Of a stretch of 64,000 nucleotides of DNA, positions 1 to 64,000 are shown in pieces. How positions within the stretch are numbered: position 1 is the stretch's first letter; every line of letters starts with the position of its first letter. Origin of the DNA: Phaeosaccion multiseriatum (Eukaryota; Protista; Ochrophyta, other classes); assembly GCA_965112735.1 (NCBI GenBank), contig OZ218957.1, positions 248,001-312,000 of the forward strand, read 5' to 3'. Below the pieces are notes generated by a model. The model was not told the DNA's origin, made no database searches, and saw nothing but the letters and a program-made list of their open reading frames with translations. Made by a program: the position numbers and the translations under genes.

Positions 1-2008
1 CCCTCCTCCCCCCCCCCTCTGACATCAGCGTGGCCATTGCCCCCGCCGTTGGCATGGTCGTCTCTCTCGTCTCTCTCGTCTCTGTCGTCTCTGTCGTCGT
101 CGTCGTCACTGACAATCATGTCCTCTTCCGGGGGAGGGCGCGGCAGTGCGCTCCGGCGACTAGGGTCACGCACTCGGCCCTGACCCTGACCCTGACCCTG
201 AGTGGGCTTCATACGACGGATCCAGTCGGGTTGCAAGGAGGCATCGGTCCCTTTGCTGCCACTGTCCGAGCCAGTGGCAGCCTTGGCCTTGCGCATGGCG
301 GGTGGAAGGAAGCTGTCGGCCAGAGAGACATTGGACGACCCCGGTGGTGCTCTTCTCTTGGCCGGGCTGCTCCTCCCCTTCCCTTTGCCCTTTGCTTTGC
401 CCTTCGCCCCCCCTGGCCTTGTGCTGCTGTGGCTGCTGCTGCCACTGCTACTACCGCTCAAGCTCGCGAGACTCCTCTCCGCCAGCAGAACCCCTCCGCC
501 CTGCCCCGCCGAAGCTCGGGGCCTCTTCCTCCCTGGGCCCGCTTGCCGCTGCCGCTGCCCCTCGCCGGTCTGCACCGCCGGGCCTTGGTCGCTCCGCTTG
601 AGCCAGTGTTGCGGAAGCCCCCCCAGAAGCCCCTCTTTCTTGGTAAAGTTCTGCTTGCTCTTGTTGGGCCTTGCGCGCCCAACTTCTTGTCCCGACCGCT
701 GAGAGGAGCTGCTCGCTGACTGAGAGGGAGAGCCTTGAGAGACAGGGACAGCCGACGCCGCCCCCCAGTCGCCCCCAGTCTCAGTGTCCTGGGCCTCCCC
801 CTCCCCCAAGGAAGAAGACTGAGCCCCTGAGGAGATCCTTGGCGGAGTCCTTCCCCTTCCCGGTGCTGCTCTGTTTGCGCTCTTCTTGCCGCCCCCGGCA
901 GCAGCAGAAGCAGCAGTTGGTGATACAGCAGCAGCAGCAGCAGCAGCAGCCTTCCTCTTCGACCCACCCGACACGGCTGATCTCCCGCCCCCCCCTGCAG
1001 CTCCAAAGGCGGGCACATGGGCCTTGGCGGACGCTGATGAGGCCGGCGGCTGCGGTGACTCAGGAGGAGGAGAGCGAGGAGGGGAAGGGGGTCGCCAAGG
1101 AGGGGCAAGGGGAGGAGAAGGAGGCCGCCTCTCCTCGGCACGGCCCTCTCTACGAGACAAGAGGCCCTCCCTGGGAGAGAGGAGGGTGGGGCGGGTGAGG
1201 CGGGAAGTCAAAAGAGAGGATATTTGGGGGGGGGTGGTCAGGGCAAGGGAGAAGGAGGACAGGAGGAGGAAGATACGGGGCAGGCAACACTCATCCCTTC
1301 CGCTGCCTTGCAGTGCCATCCAGCTACCCCTGTGTCTCCGCGCGCTCACCTGCCGCTGACCTGGCGAGGGTCGAAAGCTGCCCCCCCCTGGGCTCCGGCC
1401 GCCGTATCACCAACTACGGCCCCTCCCGCAGAGGCAGGCGCGTGCTTGGTGCTGGGAGGGGCCTCTGCTGGGCTGTTGTTGGCTGCTGCGAGGCTCTGCC
1501 TGCCCCTGGCTCTTCCCCTCCCCCTCCCCCTCGTGTTTGTCAGCGTCCAAGTCGGGGTCTTGGGTGCAGCGACCTCCACACTTGCCTAAAGAGAAAGACC
1601 AAGAAAGAGAGGGCACAAGGAGGGTTAGTAGGCAGGTGATGCTCACTCGCGTGTGCCCGAGGAAAGGCACCTAAAAAAGTATACACTTGCCTTATTCTTC
1701 CTGTCACGGCGTTGCTGTTGCTGCTGCTCATCCTGCCGCTCCTCCTGCTGCTGCTCCTCCGCGGCGGCGTAGAAGGGGTCATATTGGTCTACGCTCGCCG
1801 CAAAGTAAACGTCATCATCCCATCCCTCGTCGTACGTGTGCTGCTGCTGCTGCGGCTGCGGTGGCTGCGGCGCGTGGTGGTCATTGTCGTACGAGGTGCC
1901 GTACCCATTCTCCTCGTGGTGCTGGTAGTGCGGAGAGTGGTGGCGGCGCCGCTGCTCTCGATGCTCTCGCGGCCTGTGCCTCCCCTGGACCCTCCTGCTA
2001 GGGTCCAT
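1..2008 (-). CDS. 5' part of an unknown low-complexity protein gene (exons 2008-1691, 1585-1350, 1170-<1); continues beyond the left edge
   Basis: ATG at 2008 (MDPSRRVQG...). The GC-AG intron 1690-1586 (phase 0) and GT-AG intron 1349-1171 (phase 2) join open frames. The third exon stays open to position 1 (...PEEDMIVSDDDDDRDD...). No recognisable domain in this part. Confidence 0.6.
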
Positions 2009-2555
2009 CGCAGTAGCAGCAGCAGCCCTCACTGGGCAGCTCCGCCACTCCAGGAAGCACTAGGGGGAAACACTACAGCTGGAAGCCCCCGCCCGGCCAA
2101 CTCCGTCAAGCTCAGCTCCGTCGACTTTTCCCCTCTGCACACGTCTGAGTATATCTCTGTCCGACGGTTTTCCCTCCCTCCAATCCCCACTCGAGATGCT
2201 TTCTTCATTTGGGCGCGCTGATCCAGAAAGGCAAAGCGTTCCCGCCGAGACGGGGTGGGGCACAAGATACCTTCGTGATGCTCAAAAGACGCAAAACCTT
2301 CTTTCCCCCTATCATCATTCAAAATCTAGTCATACCCCGTCCTTCTGATGTGCTTGAGAAGTCCAGAGAGGGAGAGAGAGAGAGAGAGAGGGGGAGAGAG
2401 TGAGGATTCTCCAATTTCCAGTTTCCAATTTCCAAACATAGTATCCTTTAACAATCCAGCCGTGCCATCGTCCTGGCCACGCCGCGATCCGCCGCGGCCG
2501 CGATCTTTGGCGAAGCATCGCAGCTCAGCCCCGCCCCCAAGGGTATCCGAGTATT

Positions 2556-19397: not shown

Positions 19398-22300
19398 ATG
19401 GCGACGTTCTTCTCATTGGCCTCGTCGGCAGCTCTGCTCCTGCTGCTTCTGGTGGCGCCATCGAAAAGTGAGTGTGGATATGCACGGGGCCCGTGGGTTG
19501 CGCCCAAGGAAGGAACAAGTATGGAAGGAGCCGGATCTTTAGAACAAATCTTTGACCCTGTCGCCCCACCACTACCGGCAGCTGCAGAGCTTACCCCTCC
19601 TTCCTCTCCTCAGGCAGTGGCTGATGCTGAAATCATAGCTGAGGGAAGCGGCCGAGAGAAGAACAACAACGTGGCCAATCTCGCGTGTGTTCCTGCCTGC
19701 TTTTCTTGACTTTCACCCCCCCCCCCCCCCCAGTCGTGGACGCTGGGGCTGAGATCGTGGCCGATATTCCCGAGCCAAACCTTCGCGAGGGATGCTCCCC
19801 GCGATGTGTGAACACTGCTGATGAAGGGCAATACAGATGCGATATCGATGCTTCTGGGAACCTGCTCTGCAACACCTTCGAGCTCTCAGGTAAGCCCTCC
19901 TCTCTCTCTGTGCCCAGGAATGCACCCCCTTACTCCCCTCCTTAGCTAGCTAGTACTACGTTCAACTGATTCATGTGGGCAACCCTGGCTGCCTCACCTT
20001 GCTTGTTGCCTGCTTTGTGCTCATAGGACCGCACACGTGCCACTTTCACTACTATACCGCCGATGAAGTCGCCCAATGCATGGCAGAGAAACGTGAGTGA
20101 CTTGCTCCTCCCCTCATCCCCTCCTGTGGATGGGCATCGTCAGACACGAAATCAGACTCTCCACCCTGCCTCCCTTGGGCCGGGCGGGGGCATTGCGTGG
20201 CTGTGTGACTGCCTGCTGGCCTTGCTTAGCTACATCCTCTGCCTCTCTGTGACCGTCTATCCCTTCCTCCCCCTCGCTCTGTCTGTCGCTCCGCCCTCGC
20301 TCTCCCTCCCTCTCCCTCTCCCCCTACCTCTTGGCACTTGGCACTTCCCCCCGCCCCCCCTGCTGCGTGCCTCCTCCTCTCTCTCCGTGTGATCTGGTGG
20401 CTGTGTCAATCTGAGCAGGAAGCTCTGTGGGCAGCGACGCCCCCTACACCCTCATCATTATGGGCTCCTCGATTCTCATGGGCAGCATTTTCACAGTCGC
20501 GCCGTGGGTGAGTGCGTGGGGCGGGGGTCGAGGCCCCAGAGGCTGGGTGGCCTTTTCTTCATGCCCAGGCAGAGAGGAGGAGAGCTCAAGGGGAGAACCA
20601 TAGCTACACGGGTGCTCTCGCTCCCTCCCGTCTTCCCTCCCTGTCCTCGCTCCCTCCCTGCCAAGAACGGAAGTTGATGGGGAGTCCGAAGCGAACGGCA
20701 CACGCACGCACCGTCTGGTGCGCTTTACCCCTGGTGACCTACTGTCTGACCGGTCCCTCCCTCCCTCGTCCCTCCCTCTCTCCCTGTTGTCCCTCGTAGC
20801 TCGTCAATGAGATCGACTCTGACTTCGACTACCAGCCCTGGATGTTCGACCCACTCCCCCCACAGCCGAGCGCCAACCCAATGGACAACTGTGCCCAGAT
20901 GGTCCTTGACGCGCAGCTCGGCCTCGTGGCAAAGAAGGCCGACGTGAACGAATCTCCCGAATGCGTGCAGGTGGGTTGCGTGAGGAGGTTTTCCCCTCCC
21001 TACTGCCCGGGCCCCCACTTCCACGTGCGCTGGCGGTGAATCGCCGTGAAGGCTTCACCGTCTCTCTCTCCCTCCCTTTGACTTATCCCCGTTGACCTCC
21101 CTTCTATCTTTCACTTTCTCACCCCCCGCGGCAACCTCCACACCCCACAGGTGTACGAGCACAGCATGGCAGGGGACTCCGCGGACACGGGGGAGGCTTC
21201 CTTCCTCGGCGACGCCAGCATCGTGTGGGCCTCTGCGCCATCCCCTGACAAGATGCAGCAGCAACTTGACCTGCTCACAGAGGCAGGACGGGACCAGGAC
21301 CACGGGCATATGGTTCTGTACCTCGGGCTGTGGTACACCTTCTGCCTGCAGGGGAGGGAGTGGGCCTGCAACATCCTGCCCGAGGGGGCGGCGCTGAGGG
21401 TTTTGAGGGGGGAGTCGCTTGCCGCTCAAGTGTCCTTCTTTGAGGGCAAGTACGCTACTTTGGTGCAGCGCATCCTCAGCGACTTCCCCAACTACGAACT
21501 GACCATCACGGGGCTACGGCGGTACTCGGACATCACCAGGGCCTACGATGACACCGTCAGACAAGTAAGTCACTGAGTCAATGGACACACTCCATGAGAC
21601 AAGTGACTGACTGGCATGAGGAGGATTGCTTCGAGTGGTGAAAGTGGTGTGGAACCGGGCGGGAGGGAGCAGGATGAGTGGAGGTGGGGCACGAGGAAGG
21701 GACGGGATGACTGAGAGGGAGGGAAGAATGGACTCGCCCTTCGCGCATGAGCTGGTGTGATTCGTGTGCGTGTGTGTGCGTGTGTGTGCGTGTGCGTGCG
21801 TGCGTGCGCGCGTGTGTATGCTTGGGTGGGTAGGAGGCGAGGGAGAAGGACAGTATGTAGAGACACGTCAGCTCCAACCTACTTCTGAGGAAGCGGCGGT
21901 TTTTTTCTGTCGAGATGCCTCGAACCCTCTTATTCCCTGAGGGCTGTTATATTCATTCCTCTAATTCATCTGTCTTGCCCCCTCCCCCTCCCCCCGCCCG
22001 CCTCACTGTCCACCCTTCCGCCCCCCCGCCCTTCGCCCCGTGCACCTCCCTTCGTTCCCTCCCTCCTTGCCTGCCCCCTCAGCTTGCCGCGAGCAGAGCC
22101 GTCAATTTCCTCAACTTGGATGGAACCACGCAGCTCAGGCCCCACCAGCCCGATGACATTAGCAATCATCCCCCCCACGTGGTGAACCATTCCTTATTCC
22201 AACGCTACATGGCTCCCATCTGTGAGGGCACCAGCGTGGGGGAGGCGCAGGAGTGCGAGGAGGAGGTGAGTCAGTCAGCTAGTCGGTCAGTCAGACAGGC

Positions 22301-23583
22301 GGTCGGTCAGTCAGGTAGACAGTCAGTCGGTCAGTCAGTCAGGCCGTCCCGTTTGTCTTGTGGTCACCCGCCGCGCCCTTCCCATTCACGTGATGTATGT
22401 ACCGCTCTTCCTCCCTACGCTCATTCCTACCCTCCCCCTCGCCCACTCTCCCCGTTGCTCTGGCCAGATGGTGGGTTCCCCCGGCTGCCAAACCGAGACG
22501 TACGACAACCCTGACGGCCGTTGGTTCGAGCAGTACAGCCGCGGTTGCGACATTAAGACCTTTACGTCGCCTCTCGGCACCGTGCTCCCCCCCGCCGTCC
22601 TCTTCTCGGCGTGCCCCCTCAACACGCCCAATCTGTTCCTCAACCCCAACTTGGACGAGAGCTTGGTGCCCTGGACGAGCTTCGCTCTGCTCTCTGCGGG
22701 TGTGCTGGACGCCTCCATTACCCACGTTACGGAGGCCGGCGATGGAGGCGCTCGCTTCACCATTAACACCGCCGGAACTGCCGACTGGCACATGCAGCTC
22801 TTTCAAGTGCTGCCTCCTGAGGACCTCACGTTGGGCGAGACCATGACGGTGAGCTTCGAAGTGACGGCCGAAGAGGGGGAGGCGGGAAGCACTCGGGCGG
22901 TCTTCCCGTACATTCAGCAGCTTGAGGCCCCGTGGAGGCCGTTTGTGTCGGGGCGGTGTGAAGTGCGCCCCTCGGGCCCGACCACATGCAGCGTCACTGC
23001 AACTCTGACGGACGTTACAGTGCCTGTCAAGTTCGGCATCCAGGGGGGAGCGTCTGACGTCGATTTCACGGTGCACGGAGCTTCGCTGTGTCGCACTGAT
23101 GACACCGTCGGATCCCCTGTGAACGTCCTGTTCGTGAATCCGGACTTCACAGATGGCCCTCTGAGCAATTGGGTTCCGTTTGTGTACATAGGCTCTGCCC
23201 CCGGTGTGGAGGGCGCGTGGACTTTCAGCGACGACGGCGCTGAACTCAACATTCTCGCCGTGGCCGAGGGCCCGACAGAGAGCTGGCACGCGCAGATGCA
23301 CCAGGACTTTTACCTCAGCAGCGTCGGAGTGGGTACATACATGGTTGCTTTTGAGGTGTCGGCGCCGGACGGGGACTTCCCCATCGACGTGTACGCACAG
23401 CAGTCGCAGGGTCCCTACAGGGTCTTCGGTAGCAACAAGTGCATGGCTAAGCAGGAGCGAGCGTGGTGCGTTGCAGAGGCGGAGGTGGATGACGTGTCGG
23501 GCTTGATCAAGTTCGGTGCACAGGGTGGTGACAACGTCGGTAAGGTGGTGCTACACAGAGCGGCGCTTTCCAAGATAGCCTGA
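19398..23583 (+). CDS. Secreted SGNH/PC-esterase-like protein with two CBM4/9-like modules, paralogue A (exons 19398-19467, 19734-19889, 20027-20092, 20419-20507, 20800-20970, 21151-21564, 22083-22265, 22468-23583)
   Basis: Signal peptide and 7 phase-consistent GT-AG introns. CHFHYYTADEVAQCM...LIIMGSS and C-terminal DDISNHP...YMAPIC resemble the CASD1/TBL GDS and DxxH blocks. NLFLNPNLD..W..GTADWHMQLFQ..LTLGETMTVSF resembles the CBM_4_9 pattern. Confidence 0.8.
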
Positions 23584-23907
23584 GACGGAAATTTTGTACT
23601 GGATGGTCATCCCCTAAGGTGGTAACATTTTCGTGGTACACGGGCATAGCCAAGAGGAGATGCTGAGGGACGTCGCTGTTAGCGCTCCTCAGGAGTGACT
23701 CGCCCGATGTCTCGGCCTCGGCCACAGCTTTGTCAAAGTGCCAACCACAATTTTGATTTACTTCGAAGTAGTTAGTAAAGCGAGGCTACATAATATGTAC
23801 ATACATTTATTTTACCTGCGATAAGAGGGCCTCTGTACATTGCGGGAGCGTGATTGATCCGCTCCAAATACGATACAAGTCTCCGTGGACTGCCATCCTA
23901 CCCATCC

Positions 23908-24960
23908 TTCCTATCCTACATGAGGGTGGGGAAGGGTGCGGGGGTCCCCTCGCGATAGTGGCGAGGCACCGCCCCGCCCCCAAGCGATACGGAGCGGAAC
24001 CGCCGCGCCCTCCCTGCAGGGGGGGGAGGGGGGAGGGGAAGGGCTGTTACGCCAGCACAAGTAGGCCCGGCAAGGAGAGTACAGAGGGTAGTAGACTACC
24101 CCGCCGCTTGCGCGCCCCTCCTCGCTCCATCTAACTGCTCCCACCTACCGGACCCCTCCACCACCTCTGCCCACTCTCCCCTCTCACCACTCCCGGCCCA
24201 CACACATCCACTGCCATCCCTCCACCACGCACCGCACCTGGCTGCTGGACAACGTGCTGGTCGAGGGAGACGAGCAGGGGGAGACCGGCCAAAACAAGCA
24301 CCACAGTTCCGATCCGCCTGTACAGGGAGCTAACGAAGAGGAGAGCCACTATCTGGCCAAAGGGCGGCGCTTCTGTTGCCTCCGGAGGTCACGGAGGTCG
24401 ACGAGCGACGTCGACAGTTCCTGCCTGCGCCCGCTGCCTCACACCAGCCAAGCGCGGCAACAAGCTCTGCCTCGGCCGACCCGGTGCCTCCGTTCTTCTT
24501 CTAGCGGTTCCCGCACTCTCGTAGCGCTACGGCAGAGTTTTCCTACCGGGATCACTTCTGGTGTTCCCGCCAGCCAGCCCACCCCGGTCGTGCTACTACC
24601 TAGGCCTAGCCTAGTTCGCTACCCTCGTTGTTACCGCCCTCTCTGCCCGGCTGTTGCTCCTGCTGCTGCCGCTGCTGCCTGTACAGCCATGACCACGGCC
24701 GAGCTCATGTCTTCTATGCCCTTGCTTGTTGCTTGCCCTCGCTCCATGCTCAACTCGCGCACAAAGTCGGTGAAGGCGTTCGCCCTCCGACCCAGCCATC
24801 CTCTCGCTACTTCATCAATCGTTTTGCTTGCTTTGTTGCAGCCAGAAGGCGGCGGGATTTGGCTTTGTAGGGTGCTGCGTCTCCTGGCTGCTGGTGCTTC
24901 TTCTTGTTCCCCTGGCTGCTGGTGCTCCTTTCTTACTGCGGGCGGTGGCGATGGTCTTTG
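23908..24960 (-). pseudogene. Deleted duplicate of the RNFT1-like RING gene
   Basis: Homologous to 33681-35600. At ~23970-23985 sequence matching ~33735 joins directly to sequence matching ~34670, losing ~0.93 kb with the TM and RING coding region. There are further indels and an in-frame stop in the exon 1 equivalent. Confidence 0.85.
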
Positions 24961-25129
24961 ACATGTCTTGATAACCGCAGCAGCCAGGAGGCTTGGGGGT
25001 TGAGAAGCGCCGCCAGCCTGGCTGTTTGTTTGTCGCACCAATGATTGTGTGGCTGATCTCTGAGATGATGATCGTTCCGTGTGGGGGTGGTCGATGCTGA
25101 CGAGCTTTTCGTGAAAGCAGCACCCACCC

Positions 25130-25217
25130 ACATAGCTACACACACATCCAACACACATACACACATCCAACACACACATCCAACACGCATACACACATCC
25201 AACACACACGCAGGCAC

Positions 25218-25251
<34 letters not shown>

Positions 25252-25390
25252 GCACGCACACGCGCACACACACATACACACACACGCACACACACACACA
25301 CACGCACTCACTTATATATATATACATATCTGACTGACACACACACACATACACACGCACACACACACACACACATACACACACATACAC

Positions 25391-25442
<52 letters not shown>

Positions 25443-25495
25443 GCACGCGCACACACACACATACACACACATCTGACTGACACACAAAACACACA
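25130..25495 (+). repeat. Imperfect (CA)n microsatellite near the duplication junction
   Basis: Read directly. Confidence 0.9.
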
Positions 25496-25724
25496 GAGAA
25501 CTTATTTTTGGTCCTTCTCAAAGCCTAGTCAGAAGAGTTTTTGAGAGGAGTGGCGCCAAAACTTGGGGTATTCGTTGCCATTGGGGTTCAATTTGACAGC
25601 AATTTTTAATTCAATTTTCTTTGTGTTGGAAAGCCGGGCCCGCCCGGCGCCCCGCAAAGCTTTAGAGCAAAAGTCCCCCACGCTCCAGCACGGAACAACC
25701 CATCCGCACAAGAGGTGGGGCGCT

Positions 25725-28700
25725 ATGACGGCGTTCTCCTTTTCGGCAGCTCTGCTCCTGCTGCTTCTGGTGGCGCCATCGAAAGGTGGGTGTGTATTGT
25801 TGACTTGCGCCCAAGAACCCAAGGAAGGAAAACCTCTCCCCCTCATTCCCCTGCAAAACTAGTCTATACTTGACTCAAGGCGCGATGGTGAGCTGGGCCA
25901 CAGTTTCCAGTGATGGCTGGTGCTGAACTAATTGAAGCGAAAACGCACGGCCCGGCCGGGCCTCGCGGCCAACCTCGCGTATGTTCCGTGCTTTTGTTTC
26001 ATCCCCCCCCCCCCCCAGTCGTGGACGCTGGGGCTGAGATCGTGGCCGATATTCCCGAGCCAAACCTTCGCGAGGGATGCTCCCCGCGATGTGTGAACAC
26101 TGCTGATGAAGGGCAATACAGATGCGATATCGATGCATCTGGGAACCTGCTCTGCAACACCTTCGAGCTCTCAGGTAACCCCTTCCTCTCTCTCTTTACC
26201 CCCAATAATCCCCCCTTCTCCCCTCCTTAGTACTACGTTTAACTGATTCATGTGGGCAACCCTGCCTGGCTGCTCGCCTTGCCTGCTTTGTGCTCATAGG
26301 ACCGCACACGTGCCACTTTCACTACTATACCGCCGATGAAGTCGTCCAATGCATGGCAGAGAAACGTGAGTGACTTCCTCCCCTCATCCCCTCCTGCGGG
26401 TGGGCATCGTCAGACACGAAATCAGACTCTCCACCCTGCCTCCCTTGAGGAGCATTGCGTGGCTGTGTGACTGCCTGCTGCCACTTAGCTACATCCTCTG
26501 CCTCTCTGTGACCGTCTATCATCTCTTCCTCCCCCTCGCTCTGTCTGTCGCTCCCTCCCTCTCCCTCTCCCTCCCTCTCCCTCTCCCCCTACCTCTTCCA
26601 CCCCCCCTGCGTGCCTCTCTCTCTCCCTGTCATCTGAGCAGGAAGCTCTGTGGGCAGCGACGCCCCCTACACCCTCATCGTTATGGGCTCCTCGGTTCTC
26701 ATGGGCAGCATTTTCACAGTCGCGCCGTGGGTGAGTGCGTGGGGCGGTTGGCCTTTTCTTCATGCCCAGCCAGAGAGGAGAAGAGCTCAAAGGGAGAACC
26801 GTACACGGGTGCTCTCCCTCCCTTCTTCCCTCCCTGTCCTCGCTCCCTCCCTGCCAAGGGAAGTCGACGGGAGGCGAACAGCACACGCACCCACCATCTG
26901 GTGCGCTTTATCCCTGACCTGCTGACTGACCGGTCCCTACCTCCCTCCCTACCTCCCTCCCTCCCTCTCTCCCTGTTGTCCCTCTTAGCTCGTCAATGAG
27001 ATCGACACTGACTTCGACTACCAGCCCTGGATGTTCGACCCACTCCCCCCACAGCCGAGCGCCAACCCAATGGACAACTGTGCCCAGATGGTCCTTGACG
27101 AGCAGCTCAGCCTCGTGGCAAAGAAGGCCGACGTGAACGAATCTCCCGAATGCGTGCAGGTGGGTTGCGTGAAGGAGTTTAGTGCATTCATGCTTCCCTC
27201 CCTCCTTACCTCCCGGGCCTCGACTCCCACGTGCGCTGGCGGTGAATCGCCGTGAAGGCTTCACCGTCTCTCCCTCCCTCCCTATATCCCCGTTGAACTC
27301 CCTTCTCTTTCACTTTCTCACCCCCCGCGCCAACCCCTACACTCCACAGGTGTACGAGCACAGCATGGCAGGGGACACCGCGGAATCGGGGGAGGCTTCC
27401 TTCCTCGGCGACGCCAGCATCGTGTGGGCCTCTGCGCCATCCCCTGACAAGATGCAGCAGCAACTTGACCTGCTCACAGAGGCAGGACGGGACCAGGACC
27501 ACGGGCATATGGTTCTGTACCTCGGGCTGTGGTACATCATCTGCCTGCAGGGGGGGGAGTGGGCCTGCAACCTCATGCCCGAGGGGGAGGACCTGAGGGA
27601 TTTGAGGGACGAGTCGCTTGCCGATCAAGTGTCCTTCTATGAGGGCAAGTACACTGCTTTGGTGCAGCGCATCCTCAGCGACTTCCCCAACTACGAACTG
27701 ACCATGACGGGGCTACGGCGGTACTCGGCCATCACCAGGGCCTACGATGACACCGTCAGCCAAGTAAGTCACTGAGTCAATGGACACACTCCATGAGACA
27801 AGTGACTGACTGACTGACTTACTGACTGACCCTCCCCTCTCCCCCCCGCCTCACTGTCCACCCCTCCGCTCCCCCGCCCTTCGCCCCGTGCACCTCCCTT
27901 CGTTCCCTCCCTCCTTGCCTGCCCCCTCAGCTTGCCGCGAGCAGCGGCGCCAATTTCCTCAACTTGCATGGAACCGCGCTGGGCAGGCCGAATCAGCCCG
28001 ATGACATCAGCAATCATCCCCCCCACGTGGTGAACCATTCCTTATTCCAACGCTACATGGCTCCCATCTGTGAGGGCACCAGCGTGGGGGAGGCGCAGGA
28101 GTGCGAGGAGGAGGTGAGTCAGTCAGCTGGTCGGTCAGTCAGACAGGCGGTCGGTCAGTCAGGTAGACAGTCAGTCGGTCAGTCAGTCAGGCCGTCCCGT
28201 TTGTCTTGTGGTCACCCGCCGCGCCCTTCCCATTCACGTGATGTATGTACCGCTCTTCCTCACCTCCCGCCCCCCCTCCTTCCTACGCACATTCCTGCGC
28301 ACTCTCTCCGTTGCTCTGGCCAGATGGTGGGTTCCCCCGGCTGCCAAACCGAGACGTACGACAACCCTGACGACAATTGGTTCGAGCAGTACAGCCGCGG
28401 TTGCGATATCAAGACCTTTACGTCGCCCCTCGGCAGCACGCTCCCCCCCGTCGTCGACGTGTCGGCGTGCCCCCTCAACACGCCCAATCTGTTCCTCAAC
28501 CCCAACTTGGACGGGAGCTTAGAGCCCTGGACGAGCTTCGCTCTGCTCTCTGGTGTGCTGGACGGCTCCATTACCCACGTTACGGAGGCCGGCGATGGAG
28601 GCGCTCGCTTCACCATTAACACCGCCGGGACTGCCGACTGGCACATGCAGTTCTTTCAAGTGATGCCTCCTGAGGACCTCACGTTGGGCGAGACCATGAC

Positions 28701-31700
28701 GGTGAGCTTCGAAGTGACGGCCGAAGAGGGGGAGGAGGGAAGTACCCGGGCGGTCTTCCCGTACATTCAGCAGGCTGGGGCCCCGTGGATGGCATTCGCG
28801 TCGGTGCCTTGTGAAGTAAGCCCCTCGGGCCCGACCACATGCAGCGTCACTGCAACTCTGACGGACGTTACAGTGCCTGTCAAGTTCGGTATCCAGGGGG
28901 GAGCGTCTGACGTCGACTTTACGGTGCACGGAGCTTCGCTGTGTCGCATGGATGACACCGTCGGATCCCCTGCACCTACGCCTGCGCCTACACCTGTGGA
29001 GACTGACCCTCCTGACACCGTCGGATCCCCTGCACCTACGCCTGCGCCTACACCTGTGGAGACTGACCCTCCTGACACCGTCGGATCCCCTGCACCTACG
29101 CCTGCGCCTACACCTGTGGAGACTGACCCTCCTGACACCGTCGGATCCCCTGCACCTACGCCTGCGCCTACACCTGTGGAGACGGACCCTCCTGACACCG
29201 TCGGATCCCCTGCACCTACGCCTGCGCCTACACCTGTGGAGACGGACCCTCCTGACACCGTCGGATCCCCTGCACCTACGCCTGCAGCCTTCGACCCCTC
29301 CTGCCCCCTCAACACGCCCAATCTGTTCCTCAACCCCAACTTGGACGTGAGCTTGGTGCCCTGGACGAGCTTCGCTCTGCTCTCTGCGGGTGTGCTGGAC
29401 GGCTCCATTACCCACGTTACGGAGGCCGGCGATGGAGGCGCTCGCTTCACCATTAACACCGCCGGGACTGCCGACTGGCACATGCAGCTCTTTCAAGTGC
29501 TGCCTCCTGAGGACCTCACGTTGGGCGATACCATGACGGTGAGCTTCGAAGTGACGGCCGAAGAGGGGGAGGAGGGAAGCACCCGGGCGGTCTTCCCGTA
29601 CATTCAGCAGCTCGAGGCCCCGTTCAGGCCGTTTGTGTCGGGGCCTTGTGAAGTAAGCCCCTCGGGCCCGACCACATGCAGCGCCACTGCAATTCTGACG
29701 GACGTTACAGTGCCTGTCAAGTTCGGCATCCAGGGAGGAGCGTCTGACGTCGATTTCACGGTGCACGGAGCTTCGCTGTGTCGCATGGATGACACCGTCG
29801 GATCCCCTGCACCTACGCCTGCGCCTACACCTGTGGAGACGGACCCTCCTGACACCATCGGATCCCTTGCACCTACGCCTGCGCCTACACCTGTAGAGAC
29901 TGACCCTCCTGACACCGCAGGATCCCCTGCACCTACGCCTGCGCCTACACCTGTGGAGACGGACCCTCCTGACACCGTCGGATCCCCTGCACCTACGCCT
30001 GCGCCTACACCTGTGGAGACGGACCCTCCTGACACCGTCGGATCCCCTGCACCTACGCCTGCGCCTACACCTGTGGAGACGGACCCTCCTGACACCGTCG
30101 GATCCCCTGCACCTACGCCTGCGCCTACACCTGTGGAGACGGACCCTCCTGACACCGTCGGATCCCCTGCACCTACGCCTGCGCCTACACCTGTGGAGAC
30201 TGACCCTCCTGACACCGTCGGATCCCCTGCACCTACGCCTGCGCCTACACCTGTGGAGACGGACCCTCCTGACACCGTCGGATCCCCTGCACCTACGCCT
30301 GCAGCCTTCGACCCCTCCTGCCCCCTCAACACGCCCAATCTGTTCCTCAACCCCAACTTGGACGAGAGCTTGGTGCCCTGGACGAGCTTCGCTCTGCTCT
30401 CTGCGGGTGTGCTGGACGGCTCCATTACCCACGTTACGGAGGACGGCGATGGAGGCGCTCGCTTCACCATCACCACCGCCGGGACTGCCGACTGGCACAT
30501 GCAGCTCTTTCAAGTGCTGCCTCCTGAGGACCTCACGTTGGGCGAGACCATGACGGTGAGCTTCGAAGTGACGGCCGAAGAGGGGGAGGAGGGAAGCACT
30601 CGGGCGGTCTTCCCGTACATTCAGCAGCTCGAGGCCCCGTTCAGGCCGTTTGTGTCGGGGCCTTGTGAAGTAAGCCCCTCGGGCCCGACCATATGCAGCG
30701 CCACTGCAATTCTGACGGACGTTACAGTGCCTGTCAAGTTCGGCATCCAGGGAGGAGCGTCTGACGTCGATTTCACGGTGCACGGAGCTTCGCTGTGTCG
30801 CATGGATGACACCGTCGGATCCCCTGCACCTACGCCTGCGCCTACACCTGTGGAGACGGACCCTCCTGACACCATCGGATCCCTTGCACCTACGCCTGCG
30901 CCTACACCTGTAGAGACTGACCCTCCTGACACCGCAGGATCCCCTGCACCTACGCCTGCGCCTACACCTGTGGAGACGGACCCTCCTGACACCGTCGGAT
31001 CCCCTGCACCTACGCCTGCGCCTACACCTGTGGAGACTGACCCTCCTGACACCGTCGGATCCCCTGCACCTACGCCTGCGCCTACACCTGTGGAGACGGA
31101 CCCTCCTGATACCGTCGGATCCCCTGCACCTACGCCTGCGCCTACACCTGTGGAGACTGACCCTCCTGACACCGTCGGATCCCCTGCACCTACGCCTGCG
31201 CCTACACCTGTGGAGACTGACCCTCCTGACACCGCCGGATCCCCTGCACCTACGCCTGCAGCCTTCGACCCCTCCTGCCCCCTCAACACGCCCAATCTGT
31301 TCCTCAACCCCAACTTGGACGAGAGCTTGGTGCCCTGGACGAGCTTCGCTCTGCTCTCTGCGGGTGTGCTGGACGGCTCCATTACCCACGTTACGGAGGA
31401 CGGCGATGGAGGCGCTCGCTTCACCATTAACACCGCCGGGACTGCCGACTGGCACATGCAGCTCTTTCAAGTGCTGCCTCCTGAGGACCTCACGTTGGGC
31501 GATACCATGACGGTGAGCTTCGAAGTGACGGCCGAAGAGGGGGAGGAGGGAAGCACTCGGGCGGTCTTCCCGTACATTCAGCAGCTCGAGGCCCCGTTCA
31601 GGCCGTTTGTGTCGGGGCCTTGTGAAGTAAGCCCCTCGGGCCCGACCATATGCAGCGCCACTGCAATTCTGACGGACGTTACAGTGCCTGTCAAGTTCGG

Positions 31701-33372
31701 CATCCAGGGAGGAGCGTCTGACGTCGATTTCACGGTGCACGGAGCTTCGCTGTGTCGCATGGATGACACCGTCGGATCCCCTGCACCTACGCCTGCGCCT
31801 ACACCTGTGGAGACGGACCCTCCTGACACCGTCGGATCCCCTGCACCTACGCCTGCGCCTACACCTGTGGAGACTGACCCTCCTGACACCGTCGGATCCC
31901 CTGCACCTACGCCTGCGCCAACACCTGTGGAGACTGACCCTCCTGACACCGTCGGATCCCCTGCACCTACGCCTGCGCCTACACCTGTAGAGACTGACCC
32001 TCCTGACACCGTCGGATCCCCTGCACCTACGCCTGCGCCAACACCTGTGGAGACTGACCCTCCTGACACCGTCGGATCCCCTGCACCTACGCCTGCGCCA
32101 ACACCTGTGGAGACTGACCCTCCTGACACCGTCGGATCCCCTGCACCTACGCCTGCGCCTACACCTGTAGAGACTGACCCTCCTGACACCGTCGGATCCC
32201 CTGCGCCTACGCCTGCGCCTACACCTGTGGAGACGGACCCTCCTGACACCGTCGGATCCCCTGCACCTACGCCTGCGCCTACACCTGTGGAGACGGACCC
32301 TCCTGACACCGTCGGATCCCCTGCACCTACGCCTGCGCCTACACCTGTGGAGACGGACCCTCCTGACACCGTCGGATCCCCTGCACCTACGCCTGCAGCC
32401 TTCAACCCCTCCTGCCCCCTCAACACGCCCAATCTGTTCCTCAACCCCAACTTGGACGAGAGCTTGGTGCCCTGGACGAGCTTCGCTCTACCCTCGGGTG
32501 TGCTGGACGGCTCCATTTCCCACGTTACGGAGGAAGGCGATGGAGGCGCTCGCTTCACCATTAACACCGCCGGGACTGCCGACTGGCACATGCAGCTCTA
32601 TCAAGTGCTGCCTCCTGAGGACCTCACGTTGGGCGAGACCATGACGGTGAGCTTCGAAGTGACGGCCGAAGAGGGGGAGGAGGGAGCGGTCTACCCGTAC
32701 ATTCAGCAGGCCGCCTTCCCGTGGATGGCATTCGCGATGGGGCCTTGTTGGGTAAGCCCCTCGGGCCCGACCACATGCACCGCCATTGCAACTCTGACGG
32801 ACGTTACAGTGCCTGTCAAGTTCGGCATCCAGGGGGGAGCGTCTGACGTCGACTTTACGGTGCACGGAGCTTCGCTGTGTCGCATGGATGACACCGTCGG
32901 ATCCCCTGTGAACGTCCTGTTCGTGAATCCGGACTTCACAGATGGCCCTCTGAACAATTGGGTTCCGTTTGTGTACATAGGCTCTGCCCCCGGTGTGGAG
33001 GGCGCGTGGACTTTCAGCGACGACGGCGTTGAACTCAACATTCTCGCCGTGGCGGAGGGCCCGACAGAGAGCTGGCACGCGCAGATGCACCAGGACTTTT
33101 ACCTCAGCGGCGTCGGAGTGGGTACATACAGGGTTGCTTTTGAGGTGTCGGCGCCGGACGGGGACTTCCCCATCGACGTGTACGCACAGCAGTCGCAGGG
33201 TCCCTACAGGGTCTTCGGTAGCAACAAGTGCATGGCTAAGCAGGAGCGAGCGTGGTGCGTTGCAGAGGCGGAGGTGGATGACGTGTCGGGCTTGATCAAG
33301 TTCGGTGCACAGGGTGGTGACAACGTCGGTAAGGTGGTGCTACACAGAGCGGCGCTTTCCAAGATAGCCTGA
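25725..33372 (+). CDS. Secreted SGNH/PC-esterase-like protein with six CBM4/9-like modules and Pro/Thr mucin-like linkers, paralogue B (8 exons, last exon 28324-33372)
   Basis: Same exon/intron structure as 19398-23583. The last exon encodes five type-A modules separated by (DTVGSPAPTPAPTPVETDPP)n linkers, plus one type-B module ending AALSKIA*. Confidence 0.82.
28954..32398 (+). repeat. Coding 60-bp minisatellite in four blocks (5, 8, 7 and 10 full units), interleaved with ~490-bp CBM module repeats
   Basis: Unit gacaccgtcggatcccctgcacctacgcctgcgcctacacctgtggagac(t/g)gaccctcct, counted line by line. Confidence 0.97.
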
Positions 33373-33680
33373 GACGGAAATTTTGTACTGGATGGTCATC
33401 CCCTAAGGTGGTAACATTTTCGTGGTACACGGGCATAGCCAAGAGGAGATGCTGAGGGACGTCGCTGTTAGCGCTCCTGAGGAGTGACTCGATTCGCCCC
33501 ATGTCTCGGCCTCGGCCACAGCTTTGTCAAAGTGCCAACCACAATTTTGATTTAGTAATATTAGTAAAGCGTGTACAATAAACGGAGAAGATGGCCTGTG
33601 TACATTGCGGAGGCGTGATTTATCCGCTCCAAATACCTTACAAGTCTCCGTGGACTGCCATCCTACCCATCCTGCCTATC

Positions 33681-35457
33681 CTACATGAGGGTGGGGAAGG
33701 GTGCGGTGGTCCCCTCGCGATAGTGGCGAGGCACCGCCTCCCCCCAGGCATCCTCTCCGACGGTCTGGCGGCAGATGGGGCAGCACGTGCCCTGCCGATA
33801 GAGCCATTCGCCGATGCAGTCTCGGCAGAACAGGTGGCCACAGTCCAGCCGCGCCGTCGCTCGGGCCCGAGCACTGAGGGCCTCGTGACAAATGCTGCAG
33901 TCGGGGTCAGCAGCGCCCGCCACCTCCTGAGGGGTGGCCAATCGACCGCGGTGTCCTGACACCAGCCCCCCGCTACAGCAGCCCCACCCTGCGAGAGCAA
34001 CCCCCTTGCCGAGGCGACACACCTGTCCCCCCTTCAGCGCCATGTAGACAAGCAGCAGCGAGTAGTCTAGCCACAATGCCTCGCCCTTCAAGGGGTCGGG
34101 CTTGGAGTCGTGGGTGAGCAGGTAGGCCCCCCACAGCGGCACAGGCAGCAGCGAGCGGTAGAGGGTAGACGCCATCTCCAGCAGGGCAAGGGTGCGGAGT
34201 TTCACCACTGGTGACCCCGGGGGGGCTCCCCTTCCTCCAGCCCTCCTCTCCCCTCCCTCTCCTCGCAGCCACGTTGCCCTCGTCTCTCCTCGCAGCCAGG
34301 CCAGCGAGGGCAGAGAGGATGGCAAGAGTCCTGACACCAGCAGCGCCTTGGCGGCCACCACTAAACACCTCGCCAGCAGGTCGGTGAAGTAAACGGACCG
34401 CGCCACGTCGAGGAAGGCAGCAGAGGGCAAGGGGAAGCTCCTCGAAACCGGCAGTAGCGCCAGCCTGCGCCACAAGCCCGTCAAAGGCCGTACTTGCAAG
34501 CCTTGCAAACTGTTGCTGTTGTTGCTGCTGCTGCCCATGAGCCATGCCAAGACGGTGCCGGTGTCGCTGTCGCTGCCGCCGCTGCTGTCATTGGGGCCAG
34601 AGGAGAGGAGCATGTATGTGCAGACGCAGGCGTACAGGGCACAGAGCCCGAGGTGGAGCAACCCCTGTCCCAAGCGATACCGAGCGGAGCCGCCGCGCCC
34701 TCCCTGCAGGGAGGGGAGGGGGGAGGGGAAGGGCTGTTACGCCAGCACAAATAGGCCCAGCAAGGAGAGTACAGAGGGTAGTAGACTACCCCGCCGCTTG
34801 CGTGCCCCTCCTCGCTCCATCTAACTGCTCCCACCTACCGGACCCCTCCACCATCTCTGCCCACTCTCCCCTCTCACTCCCGGCCCACACACATCCACTG
34901 CCATCCCTCCACCACCGCACCTGCTGGACCACGTGCTGGTCGAGGGAGACAAGTAGGGGGAGACCGGCCAAAACGAGCACCACAGTTCCGATCCGCCTGT
35001 ACAGAAAGCGAACGAAGAGGAGAGCCACCATCTGTCCAATGGGACCCATGTTGTCACGCTCTTGCGCGACCCTAACCCCCCCCCCCCCTTGCTGCAGCGC
35101 CTGCTCTTCTTGGCGGTGCCGCTGCTGCCTCCGGAGGTCACGGAGCTCGACGAGCGACGTCGCGAGTTCCTGCTCCCGCTGCCTCACAAGCGCGGCAAGC
35201 TCTGCCTCGAGCCGGTGCCTCCGTTCTTCTTCCAGCGGTTCCCGTACCGCTACGGCGGAGTTTTCCTGCTGGGCATCACTTCTGTTCCCGCCACCCCCGT
35301 CGTTGACACCCGTGCTCCCTTGGTCATTGCCGCCCTCCCTGCCCGGCTGTTGCTCCTGCTGCTGCCGCTGCTGCCTGTACATCACCACGAGCTCATCTCT
35401 TTTGTACCCTTGCCCTCCATGCTTGCGCACAAAATCGGTGAAGGCGTTCCGGCCCAT
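33681..35457 (-). CDS. RNFT1/RNFT2-like multi-pass membrane RING E3 ubiquitin ligase (exons 35457-34921, 34703-33681)
   Basis: C3HC4 RING CSICHE...LDCGHLFCRDCIGEWL...CCPICR. Family-like segments LEMASTLYRSLLPVPLW and C-terminal YREGTT. Several TM helices. Phase-0 GT-AG intron. The start codon is inferred. Confidence 0.85.
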
Positions 35458-36018: not shown

Positions 36019-57515
<21,497 letters not shown>

Positions 57516-62930: not shown

Positions 62931-62990
<60 letters not shown>

Positions 62991-64000
62991 TTGTGTGTTT
63001 GTGTGTGTATGTGTGTATGTGCGTGTGTGTGTGTGTGTGTGTGCGTGTGTGTGTGTGCGTGTGTGCGTGTGCGTGCTTGTGCGTGCTTGTGCGTGTATGT
63101 GCACTCAAGTTATGACTCCCCCACGTGCCCTGTGCTGCCCTGTGCAGGTACCGGCACCACTGCCGCCACTGCGGAGAGGCGTTTTGCAACCCCCACTCGT
63201 GGTATAAGCACCCCATTCCCAAGTTCGGTCCTAACACTAGGCTGCCGCAGCGCGTGTGCCTGCCCTGCAAGACGCTGCTGGAGCTGGAGGACTGGAGGGA
63301 TAGGAGGTAGGGAAGGAGATGATTGGAGGCATATGGATGGACATGAGTAGAGTATAAGGTGGGACAGGAGAGAGGGAGGGAGGGAGGGAGGCGGGGAGGG
63401 GCGTATACTGCCCTTGTTCTGTTTGCCTCTCTCTACCCTGTGGGCCTCGCATCGCCTTCCACTCTCATTCTCTCTCTTTCTCATTGTATGTCTCTCTCTC
63501 TTGCTCCCTCCCTGCCTTTTTTTCTCTCTTTATTTCTCTCTCTCCCTCATTGCCTATTCTCTCTCTTTTATCTCTCCCTCGTTGTCGCTCTCCTGGCCCA
63601 CTCACTGCCTCTCCCGTCCCCGCGAAACGGCATCGTAACGGTTTTCTGTAACCGTAACCTCAGTGCGTGGCGCTTCGAGCGTCTTGAGGCCTACCGCCGG
63701 GGGGAGCTCATCACCTACCACGAGGACCGCACAGACACCAACTACGACAAGGTACGCTGCCATCTGCTACCATCCTTATCATTTCCTTACTTCGTGTCCT
63801 TGCGATCTGCCGGCCTACTGACTGGAGGGTTAGCGGAAGGAACTCCATCCACTGCCATCCCCCCTCTCCCTGTGTGCGGTCACCGAGTCGGCACAACCTA
63901 TAACCCCGCGAGGGGCTGTGTAGTGTCTTGGTGAAGAGGCTCCCTCAATTGGTGCAGCCTGTCCGTATGCCTCCCACATGCTATGCGTCCCTTACGCCTC
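61851..64000 (+). CDS. FYVE zinc-finger protein, 5' part (exons 61851-62923, 63148-63306, 63664-63751; continues beyond the window)
   Basis: Spliced FYVE: CFACGAHFDLTR-YRHHCRHCGEAFC...H...QRVCLPC. Introns are GT-AG and phase-consistent. Long disordered N-terminus; the start codon is inferred. Confidence 0.85.

Follow-up and report, generated by a model that had tools for sequence, protein, structure and literature searches.

Two neighbouring genes of the ochrophyte Phaeosaccion multiseriatum raise the question of whether a large excess of amino-acid-changing differences between young tandem paralogues is evidence of positive selection. The genes, here called copy A and copy B, lie in a 64,000-nucleotide (nt) stretch of DNA (the window, G000:C8:248001-312000) from a 67-Mb assembly, G000, of 22 contigs and about 60% G+C. 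They are intact tandem paralogues, and each would encode a secreted protein in which a predicted signal peptide precedes a Cys-rich lobe, a domain of SGNH/PC-esterase-like type and modules resembling the carbohydrate-binding module (CBM) family CBM_4_9. A preliminary description of the window had noted that the esterase exons differ almost only at amino-acid-changing sites, and had proposed positive selection on substrate specificity after duplication. The reading favoured here, to which we would give a probability of about 55%, is that the divergence was shaped by gene conversion and by constraint, and that replacement was near-neutral or mildly diversifying in two variable segments, both of them close to the putative active site.

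The tandem duplication emerges from comparison of the window with itself, in which 19670-21613 matches 25964-27812, 21980-23119 matches 27830-28972, and the tail of copy A matches 32413-33746, with the internal repeats of copy B lying in between. Exon models of both copies, which run on the plus (+) strand, were rebuilt from GT-AG sites, and all borders are canonical AG/GT. Exon 1 codes for a hydrophobic signal peptide in both copies, and occupies 19398-19467 in copy A (70 nt, phase 1, with the ATG at 19398 and a GTGAGT donor) and 25725-25785 in copy B (61 nt), the two differing by a 9-nt insertion or deletion when copy A is aligned with the upstream part of copy B. Interrupted by intron 1, the codon shared between exons 1 and 2 is ATC (I) in copy A and GTC (V) in copy B. 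Exon pairs 2-7 have equal lengths in the two copies (156, 66, 89, 171, 414 and 183 nt). The reading frames are supported because the exon pattern is common to at least 10 paralogous loci, and because a paralogue with a single open frame and a foreign homologue, P0003, agree with it.

The codon counts behind the proposal of selection were reproduced exactly. Codon statistics were computed per exon, with phases set by the 61-nt exon 1 of copy B and three split codons omitted. Exons 2-7 contain 40 nucleotide differences in 1079 nt, which amount to 33 non-synonymous and 3 synonymous codon differences, as had been described. In exon 6 (21151-21564 in copy A, 27350-27763 in copy B), 21 nucleotide differences fall in 19 of the 138 codons, and all 19 codon differences are non-synonymous, again as described. 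Exon 7 (22083-22265 and 27931-28113) holds 8 non-synonymous and 2 synonymous codon differences, every one of them inside codons 5-26. The remaining exons contribute little: one synonymous difference in exon 2, which encodes the Cys-rich N-terminal part (19734-19889 and 26019-26174), one non-synonymous difference, A to V, in exon 3 (20027-20092 and 26300-26365), and three non-synonymous but no synonymous differences in exon 5 (20800-20970 and 26989-27159). Exon 4 (20419-20507 and 26642-26730) carries in both copies a block-I-like MGSS motif with the putative nucleophile Ser, and its two I to V differences flank the GSS, a motif that is conserved in close paralogues. All of the coding differences in exons 2-7 are frame-keeping substitutions, both open reading frames (ORFs) are undamaged, as are their splice sites, and A and B do not differ in the putative catalytic motifs.

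Whether these counts amount to a ratio of non-synonymous to synonymous divergence (dN/dS, or omega) above 1 is a separate matter. The Nei-Gojobori method yields 5 synonymous differences over 237 sites and 35 non-synonymous differences over 834 sites in exons 2-7, corresponding to a dS of 0.021, a dN of 0.043 and a ratio of 2.0, with a one-sided Fisher test on these counts giving p 0.09. By codon position, the nucleotide differences are spread evenly (16, 14 and 10 at positions 1, 2 and 3), as unselected mutation would give. A purpose-written pairwise likelihood analysis under the Goldman-Yang model (GY94) placed omega for exons 2-7 at 1.56 with F3x4 and 1.62 with F61 codon frequencies, the 95% support extending from about 0.7 to 4-6. 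A value of 1 was not rejected for these exons by likelihood-ratio test (LRT), either with the two sets of codon frequencies (p 0.34-0.38) or with the transition/transversion parameter kappa fixed at 2 or 4 (p 0.27 and 0.15, respectively); a value of 0.5 was rejected (LRT 6.3-9.7), and 0.2 strongly so. When 40 random single-base changes were simulated, five or fewer were synonymous with a probability of 0.08, 0.04 or 0.02 at a transition share of 0.33, 0.45 or 0.60. Thus, with site counts, codon frequencies and kappa modelled, pairwise dN/dS is not significantly greater than 1 (p 0.15-0.38), an outcome that the preliminary description had itself named as refuting its proposal. An omega of about 1.5-2 is compatible with some diversifying selection and falls short of demonstrating dN/dS above 1.

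The introns of the two copies provide a neutral yardstick, for which one reliability filter was applied alike to exons and introns. Filtered intron divergence is 38/759, or 5.0%; raw global intron alignments had given 9-10%, and were set aside as part of that figure is misalignment in CT-rich tracts. Measured against the filtered introns, non-synonymous divergence (35/834, 4.2% raw) is not elevated (p 0.47), nor is it elevated in exons 6 and 7 (29/462) relative to introns 5-7 (19/412; p 0.30). Synonymous divergence (5/237), on the other hand, is marginally lower than that of the introns (p 0.066). In the case of intron 6 (21565-22082 in copy A), the first 46 nt are the same in A and B and the last ~100 nt contain 4 mismatches under the filter. 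Aligned with the 167-nt intron of copy B, the copy A intron is longer by an insertion of 351 nt at 21611-21961, which includes a (GT)n tract and is absent from copy B.

Silent divergence is far from uniform along the locus. Over 16 segments the heterogeneity of silent sites is significant (chi-square p 0.003), with dS only 0.01 in exons 2-6 and in the type-2 CBM of exon 8, yet 0.12 in the first 46 codons of exon 8 and 0.06-0.13 between the type-1 CBM of copy A and the five such modules of copy B. Intron divergence likewise varies, from 1.9% in intron 7 up to 9.8% in intron 5. Synonymous sites of the exon 8 linker and first CBM (15/158) differ more often than those of exons 2-6 (2/197; p 0.0002) or of the type-2 CBM (1/105; p 0.003). 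Segmental silent divergence ranging from ~1% to ~10% is the pattern expected of patchy interlocus conversion or unequal exchange, and gene conversion would be the likely cause of the mosaic. Patchy gene conversion is what the preliminary description had itself named as capable of explaining the pattern without selection, and silent divergence is indeed heterogeneous in this way. A further consequence of the heterogeneity is that a dS of 0.02 is an unstable denominator.

The replacements themselves bear the marks of continued constraint. With five paralogues as outgroups for polarisation, 10 replacements are derived in copy A and 9 in copy B, with 14 ambiguous, and replacements occupy 7 of 153 family-invariant columns versus 26 of 204 variable columns (p 0.009). 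Since the replacements avoid invariant columns and derive on both lineages, constraint persists and both copies have been changing. The change from GAALRVLRG to GEDLRDLRD after the GLW block (exon 6 codons 59-61), which the preliminary description had called a gain of acidic residues, is present, but the polarity of that statement holds only in part: the outgroups and the family consensus, EGEDL, point to a loss in copy A at codon 81 at least, and copy B has gained its acidic residue at codon 87. At codon 80 the outgroups disagree, and the remaining acidic differences are ambiguous.

The reported clustering of changes after the GLW block and before DISNH (exon 7 codons 25-29, the putative Asp/His block) is confirmed, and takes the form of two exon peaks of divergence. 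Peak 1 comprises exon 6 codons 63-103, right after the GLW block (21337-21459 in copy A, 27536-27658 in copy B), and holds 13 of the 19 differing codons; in sliding windows, 21334-21423 reaches 8 mismatches in 60 columns. Peak 2 comprises exon 7 codons 5-21 (22095-22145 and 27943-27993), 4-20 residues before the putative catalytic Asp/His, with 10-11 mismatches per 60-63 columns over 22084-22151, and is flanked by near-identical intron. Around the peaks lie identical runs of 150 columns in exon 6 and of 120 and 125 columns across intron 7 and the remainder of exon 7. For peak 2 the scan statistic gives P = 1e-4 locally and 0.008 when the whole unit is considered. Within the exon 7 peak, 3 of 12 changes are synonymous, which is the neutral share, so this peak looks like old divergence spared homogenisation and not like an adaptive burst. 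Each peak falls in a stretch where the aligned family is at its most variable. Because of this, low constraint, together with mismatches that hinder conversion, could also make the peaks.

Taken together, these observations fit a sequence of events in which interlocus gene conversion or unequal exchange would have held most exon sequence near 1% silent divergence, while introns 4-5, the exon 8 linker and the first CBM retained 6-12%. Replacements would have accrued at about the neutral rate on both lineages, mainly at positions variable across the family, and would have become concentrated in the two short segments of peaks 1 and 2. The shortage of synonymous differences may then reflect a small, recently homogenised target (5 changes over 237 sites) combined with clustered multi-codon changes.

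Several observations weigh against this reading, most of them in the direction of diversifying selection in the substrate-cleft region that changed specificity and shifted the net charge by some eight units between the copies. Taken by itself, exon 6 shows 19-21 non-synonymous changes against 0-1 synonymous, leaving omega unbounded at a nominal p of 0.011-0.026, or 0.007 if the mutational transition share were as high as in introns; the exon was picked post hoc, and a Bonferroni correction over six exons brings the value to ~0.07-0.14. The family also contains a second young pair, L008 on contig 9 and L010 on contig 6, of overall DNA identity comparable to that of A and B. It has 11 synonymous and 17 non-synonymous codon differences, a dS of 0.050, a dN of 0.024, an omega of 0.48 and introns diverged by 6.8%. 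The ratio of non-synonymous to synonymous differences is significantly higher in A/B than in this sister pair (p 0.023 on Nei-Gojobori counts, 0.005 on codon counts), so protein evolution of A/B is accelerated relative to its kin. The pair thus evolves unusually fast at the protein level for its family, and positive selection is possible. In addition, an exon peak between low-divergence introns has been described as a signature of divergence kept by selection under conversion (PMC3924837, section 3.2), and XOAT1, a xylan O-acetyltransferase of plants, has a cleft-wall loop 17-22 residues before the catalytic His (10.1101/2020.01.16.909127). By analogy, peak 2 would correspond to that loop and both peaks may lie near the substrate cleft; in a model of a paralogue, peak 1 maps to short helices and the start of a long helix after the block-III-like strand. 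A last difficulty concerns the 5' half, where synonymous divergence of exons 2-6 (2/197, ~1%) is well below that of the interleaved introns (31/470, ~6.6%; p 0.0014), a gap that is lacking in L008/L010. The gap extends over 19890-21150 versus 26175-27349, that is, introns 2-5 and the exons between them. It could be due to exon-biased homogenisation, plausibly with conversion favoured where purifying selection holds identity high.

The comparison with the human red and green opsins, and with Teshima and Innan's model of duplicated genes that diverge under conversion (reviewed in PMC3924837), cuts both ways. Tandem copies, mosaic silent divergence, and low-divergence flanking introns against sharp peaks in exons 6 and 7 are shared with A/B, but the A/B peaks sit in family-variable segments, and over the 5' half it is the introns that have diverged further and the exons less, opposite to what the opsins show. 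Selection on specificity as the principal explanation is therefore a possibility to be held tentatively, well short of even odds. For it speak the omega estimate, the contrast with the sister pair, the intact ORFs and identical putative catalytic motifs, the avoidance of invariant columns, and the position of the peaks, one just after the GLW block and the other before the putative Asp/His. It has to contend with an omega of 1 that stands for exons 2-7, a dN not above intron divergence, differences uniform over codon positions, and an exon 7 peak with a neutral synonymous share. When neighbouring changes are merged into events, 3 of 27 are synonymous and P becomes 0.03-0.13, and such tests are known to be inflated by gene conversion as well as by multinucleotide changes (10.1101/165969; PMC3966223). 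That selection for new specificity contributed materially is likewise less likely than not. What stands of the original proposal, in short, is an omega estimate above 1, acceleration relative to the sister pair, constraint at family-invariant sites and two exon peaks by putative active-site blocks; significance of omega does not, and the marks of patchy conversion tell against it.

The remaining explanations are less probable. Differing codons are adjacent in 10 pairs (P = 0.0007 under uniform placement), three codons carry double changes, and the exon spectrum is rich in transversions (27/40 versus 14/41 in introns); codon adjacency and a transversion-rich spectrum are both what multinucleotide events typically leave behind, and such events are known to look like positive selection (10.1101/165969). 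In three places, moreover, the first bases of adjoining codons look swapped: GCT ACT versus ACT GCT at 21454-21459, ATC CTG versus CTC ATG at 21373-21378, and, in exon 1, GCG ACG versus ACG GCG at 19401-19406. These swaps may be coincidence or a particular type of multinucleotide event. That a few multinucleotide or templated events, almost always non-synonymous, made most of the replacements is nonetheless unlikely, given that adjacency within the hot region alone is not significant (P = 0.11), that changes within each cluster derive on both lineages and would require several independent events, and that a third paralogue with a matching donor patch was not found in a base-by-base check, which turned up no run of A- or B-specific states beyond shared ancestral ones. 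Plain relaxation of constraint, with neutral drift at tolerant surface sites and a synonymous shortage that is mere sampling noise, would account for an omega indistinguishable from 1, for the even codon-position spread, for a dN similar to intron divergence and for replacements mostly at family-variable columns. Uniform drift would produce neither the silent heterogeneity (p 0.003) nor exon 2-6 synonymous divergence below that of adjacent introns (p 0.0014), and the strong clustering of the differences and the intact long ORFs, splice sites and motif residues are also at odds with it; we regard this explanation as improbable, if slightly less so than the mutational one. As for an artefact of assembly or annotation, through collapsed alleles, sequencing errors or wrong exon phases, no point in its support was found. 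The copies stand in tandem on one contig with different architectures (one versus five type-1 CBM modules), all differences are frame-keeping substitutions, the canonical exon borders are common to at least 10 paralogues, and one paralogue has exons 3-7 in a single open frame, so that such an artefact is very improbable indeed. Conversion-shaped, constraint-dependent divergence thus remains the preferred account of the pair.

What kind of protein is diverging in this manner was approached by searches with single exons or uninterrupted ORFs. No Pfam family was matched at E <= 1 by exon peptides 2, 5, 6 and 7, by three paralogue ORFs or by residues 1-600 of P0003, and none of these exon peptides, paralogue ORFs or P0003 residues gave a gathering-score match to PC-esterase (PF13839). 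A word-based protein search and a PDB sequence search with the intronless ORF of paralogue L009 returned nothing, a weak blank in view of the low-complexity-rich query, and a metagenome scan with a single exon 6 peptide found no relative. A HMMER profile of nine exon 6 peptides, run against 1.84 billion representative proteins, gave 4 matches, of which P0003 (GCA_964200425.2) is the sole true homologue. P0004 was rejected by its sequence as a repeat protein, and P0001 and P0002, judged by their matches in 18 and 12 short stretches, were taken as probable repeat artefacts. The homologue P0003 (locus L017, CAXMZZ020000020.1:27706-42595) has the same N-terminal domain followed by a Pfam Acyl_transf_3 membrane domain at residues 623-961, a fusion that suggests that the family may work in glycan O-acetyl transfer. 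A parallel architecture is found in CASD1/Cas1p and OatA, where an SGNH-like part is likewise joined to a membrane part of acyltransferase type. Look-alikes in an atlas, which serve as a lead only, were haptophyte hypothetical proteins (0.94-0.95) and PC-Esterase and NXPE clusters (0.91-0.92).

The fold was approached through L009 (G000:C8:2200828-2204169; ORF 451-2481, minus strand), an intronless distant paralogue that carries exons 3-7 as a single open frame and whose exon 6 part is 37% identical to that of copy A. An AlphaFold2 model of L009:1267-2238 was built on a shallow alignment; a first MAFFT alignment had misplaced exon 4 and 5 fragments, and these were dropped from the alignment used. 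In the model (predicted local distance difference test 63.7, predicted template modelling score 0.68) strands and helices alternate. Compared with 48,161 chains by VIA, its best match is XOAT1 (6cci_A; Z 13.4, root-mean-square deviation 3.6 A over 203 residues), with a Z 1.6 above the next entry, and all 50 matches listed are SGNH/GDSL-type folds (Z 8.9-13.4). Agreement by Foldseek is weak, with probabilities of 0.9-0.99 but E values of only 0.01-0.1. The three-layer alpha/beta/alpha fold with five parallel strands that defines SGNH/GDSL proteins is found in this paralogue model, as distinct from A and B themselves.

At the level of motifs, the correspondence is partial. Where block I, canonically GDS(L), would be expected, the first strand is followed by GSS in A, in B and at seven other loci of close paralogues, by GGS in P0003 and by GAE in L009; a Ser is present in A and B, in a motif that departs from the canonical one. 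For block III, A and B read GLW(Y) where SGNH proteins have GxND with the oxyanion Asn; the XOAT1 preprint reports that TBL proteins are also without blocks II and III (10.1101/2020.01.16.909127). Block V is DISNH in A and B, that is, DxxxH and not DxxH. Most paralogues, and P0003 as well, retain the 'xHP' His, with the position of the acidic residue shifting, whereas L009 has Asn in its place and is without the Ser, and L015 is also without the His; judging from these residues, L009 is probably a catalytically dead member of the family. The label of esterase given to A and B in the preliminary description thus finds support at the level of fold, on the paralogue model, but not in any matched sequence family, and it is reasonable to use it in a fold-level sense, with catalysis putative.

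The nearest kind of protein, as far as the model indicates, would be the PC-esterase/TBL glycan O-acetyl enzymes (PF13839; Arabidopsis XOAT1/TBL29, 6CCI; CASD1, Cas1p), to whose Pfam profile the family nonetheless gives no match. The resemblance lies in the structure, in a Cys-rich part before the catalytic lobe, in a Gly-x-Ser after the first strand and in a His near the C-terminus of the domain. The departures are GSS in place of GDS, DxxxH in place of DxxH and GLW for GxND, together with fusion of the A/B domain to CBM_4_9-like modules and predicted secretion as opposed to Golgi anchoring. Esterases of families CE2 (2WAO/4XVH) and CE3 resemble A and B in their SGNH-like catalytic fold (Z 10.5-11.1), their beta-sandwich carbohydrate-binding module and their secretion, but have no sequence-level relation to the A/B domain. 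The beta-sandwich of CE2 is N-terminal and of another family, while the one to six CBM_4_9-like modules here are C-terminal, with mucin-like linkers.

Exon 8 is where the architectures of the two copies part. In copy A (22468-23583) it encodes a linker and two CBM_4_9-like modules, one of each type (type 1 and type 2), includes the stop codon, and scores 22.4 bits against Pfam CBM_4_9 (PF02018), just under the cut-off of 25.9 bits. In copy B (28324-33372), exon 8 is a 1682-codon open frame with five near-identical type-1 modules, separated by 60-nt tandem repeats, and then a type-2 module and the stop codon; it passes the same cut-off with 65.7 bits over three stretches. The exon holds repeat families D5-D8 and D13-D16, and each 60-nt repeat unit codes for a 20-residue Pro/Thr-rich linker, which is missing from copy A with its single type-1 module. 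Amplification of type-1 modules in copy B appears to be recent, since modules 2-4 have a mutual dS of only 0.008-0.016.

Outside the two genes, a 923-nt stretch downstream of copy B (33746-34669) has no counterpart after copy A, and the spacer between the copies includes a lengthy, imperfect (CA)n microsatellite at 25117-25495, with related tracts at 46515-46808 and 62932-63114. The exon-structured family to which A and B belong has at least 10 further paralogous loci in the assembly, spread over six contigs and including three clustered on contig 9 (C2:930604, C2:2291643, C9:239101-250556, C6:208880-209496, C6:1483288, C1:4711426-4715395 and C4:1032179).

As it stands, the case of A and B indicates that a striking ratio of non-synonymous to synonymous differences between young tandem paralogues can come about when synonymous sites are few, conversion is mosaic and changes are clustered. 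The claim of selection depends on a few missing synonymous changes in a locus whose history is mosaic and whose substitutions are clustered, and to read the count as adaptation would take data from orthologues or populations. Should selection prove real, the ~25 changed residues would be specificity determinants, and would provide a short list for residue swaps in a family that is nearly without relatives outside its lineage, with one true homologue among 1.84 billion representative proteins. A rather speculative idea, less likely than not, is that the peaks mark specificity segments which line the substrate cleft of a glycan O-acetyl enzyme, PC-esterase-like in kind and restricted to this lineage, and that selection keeps these segments different between the copies (including a shift of ~8 net charges) as conversion homogenises the rest. 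If true, the pair would be a non-animal case of the opsin-type 'peak of divergence', pointing at the residues that set polysaccharide specificity.

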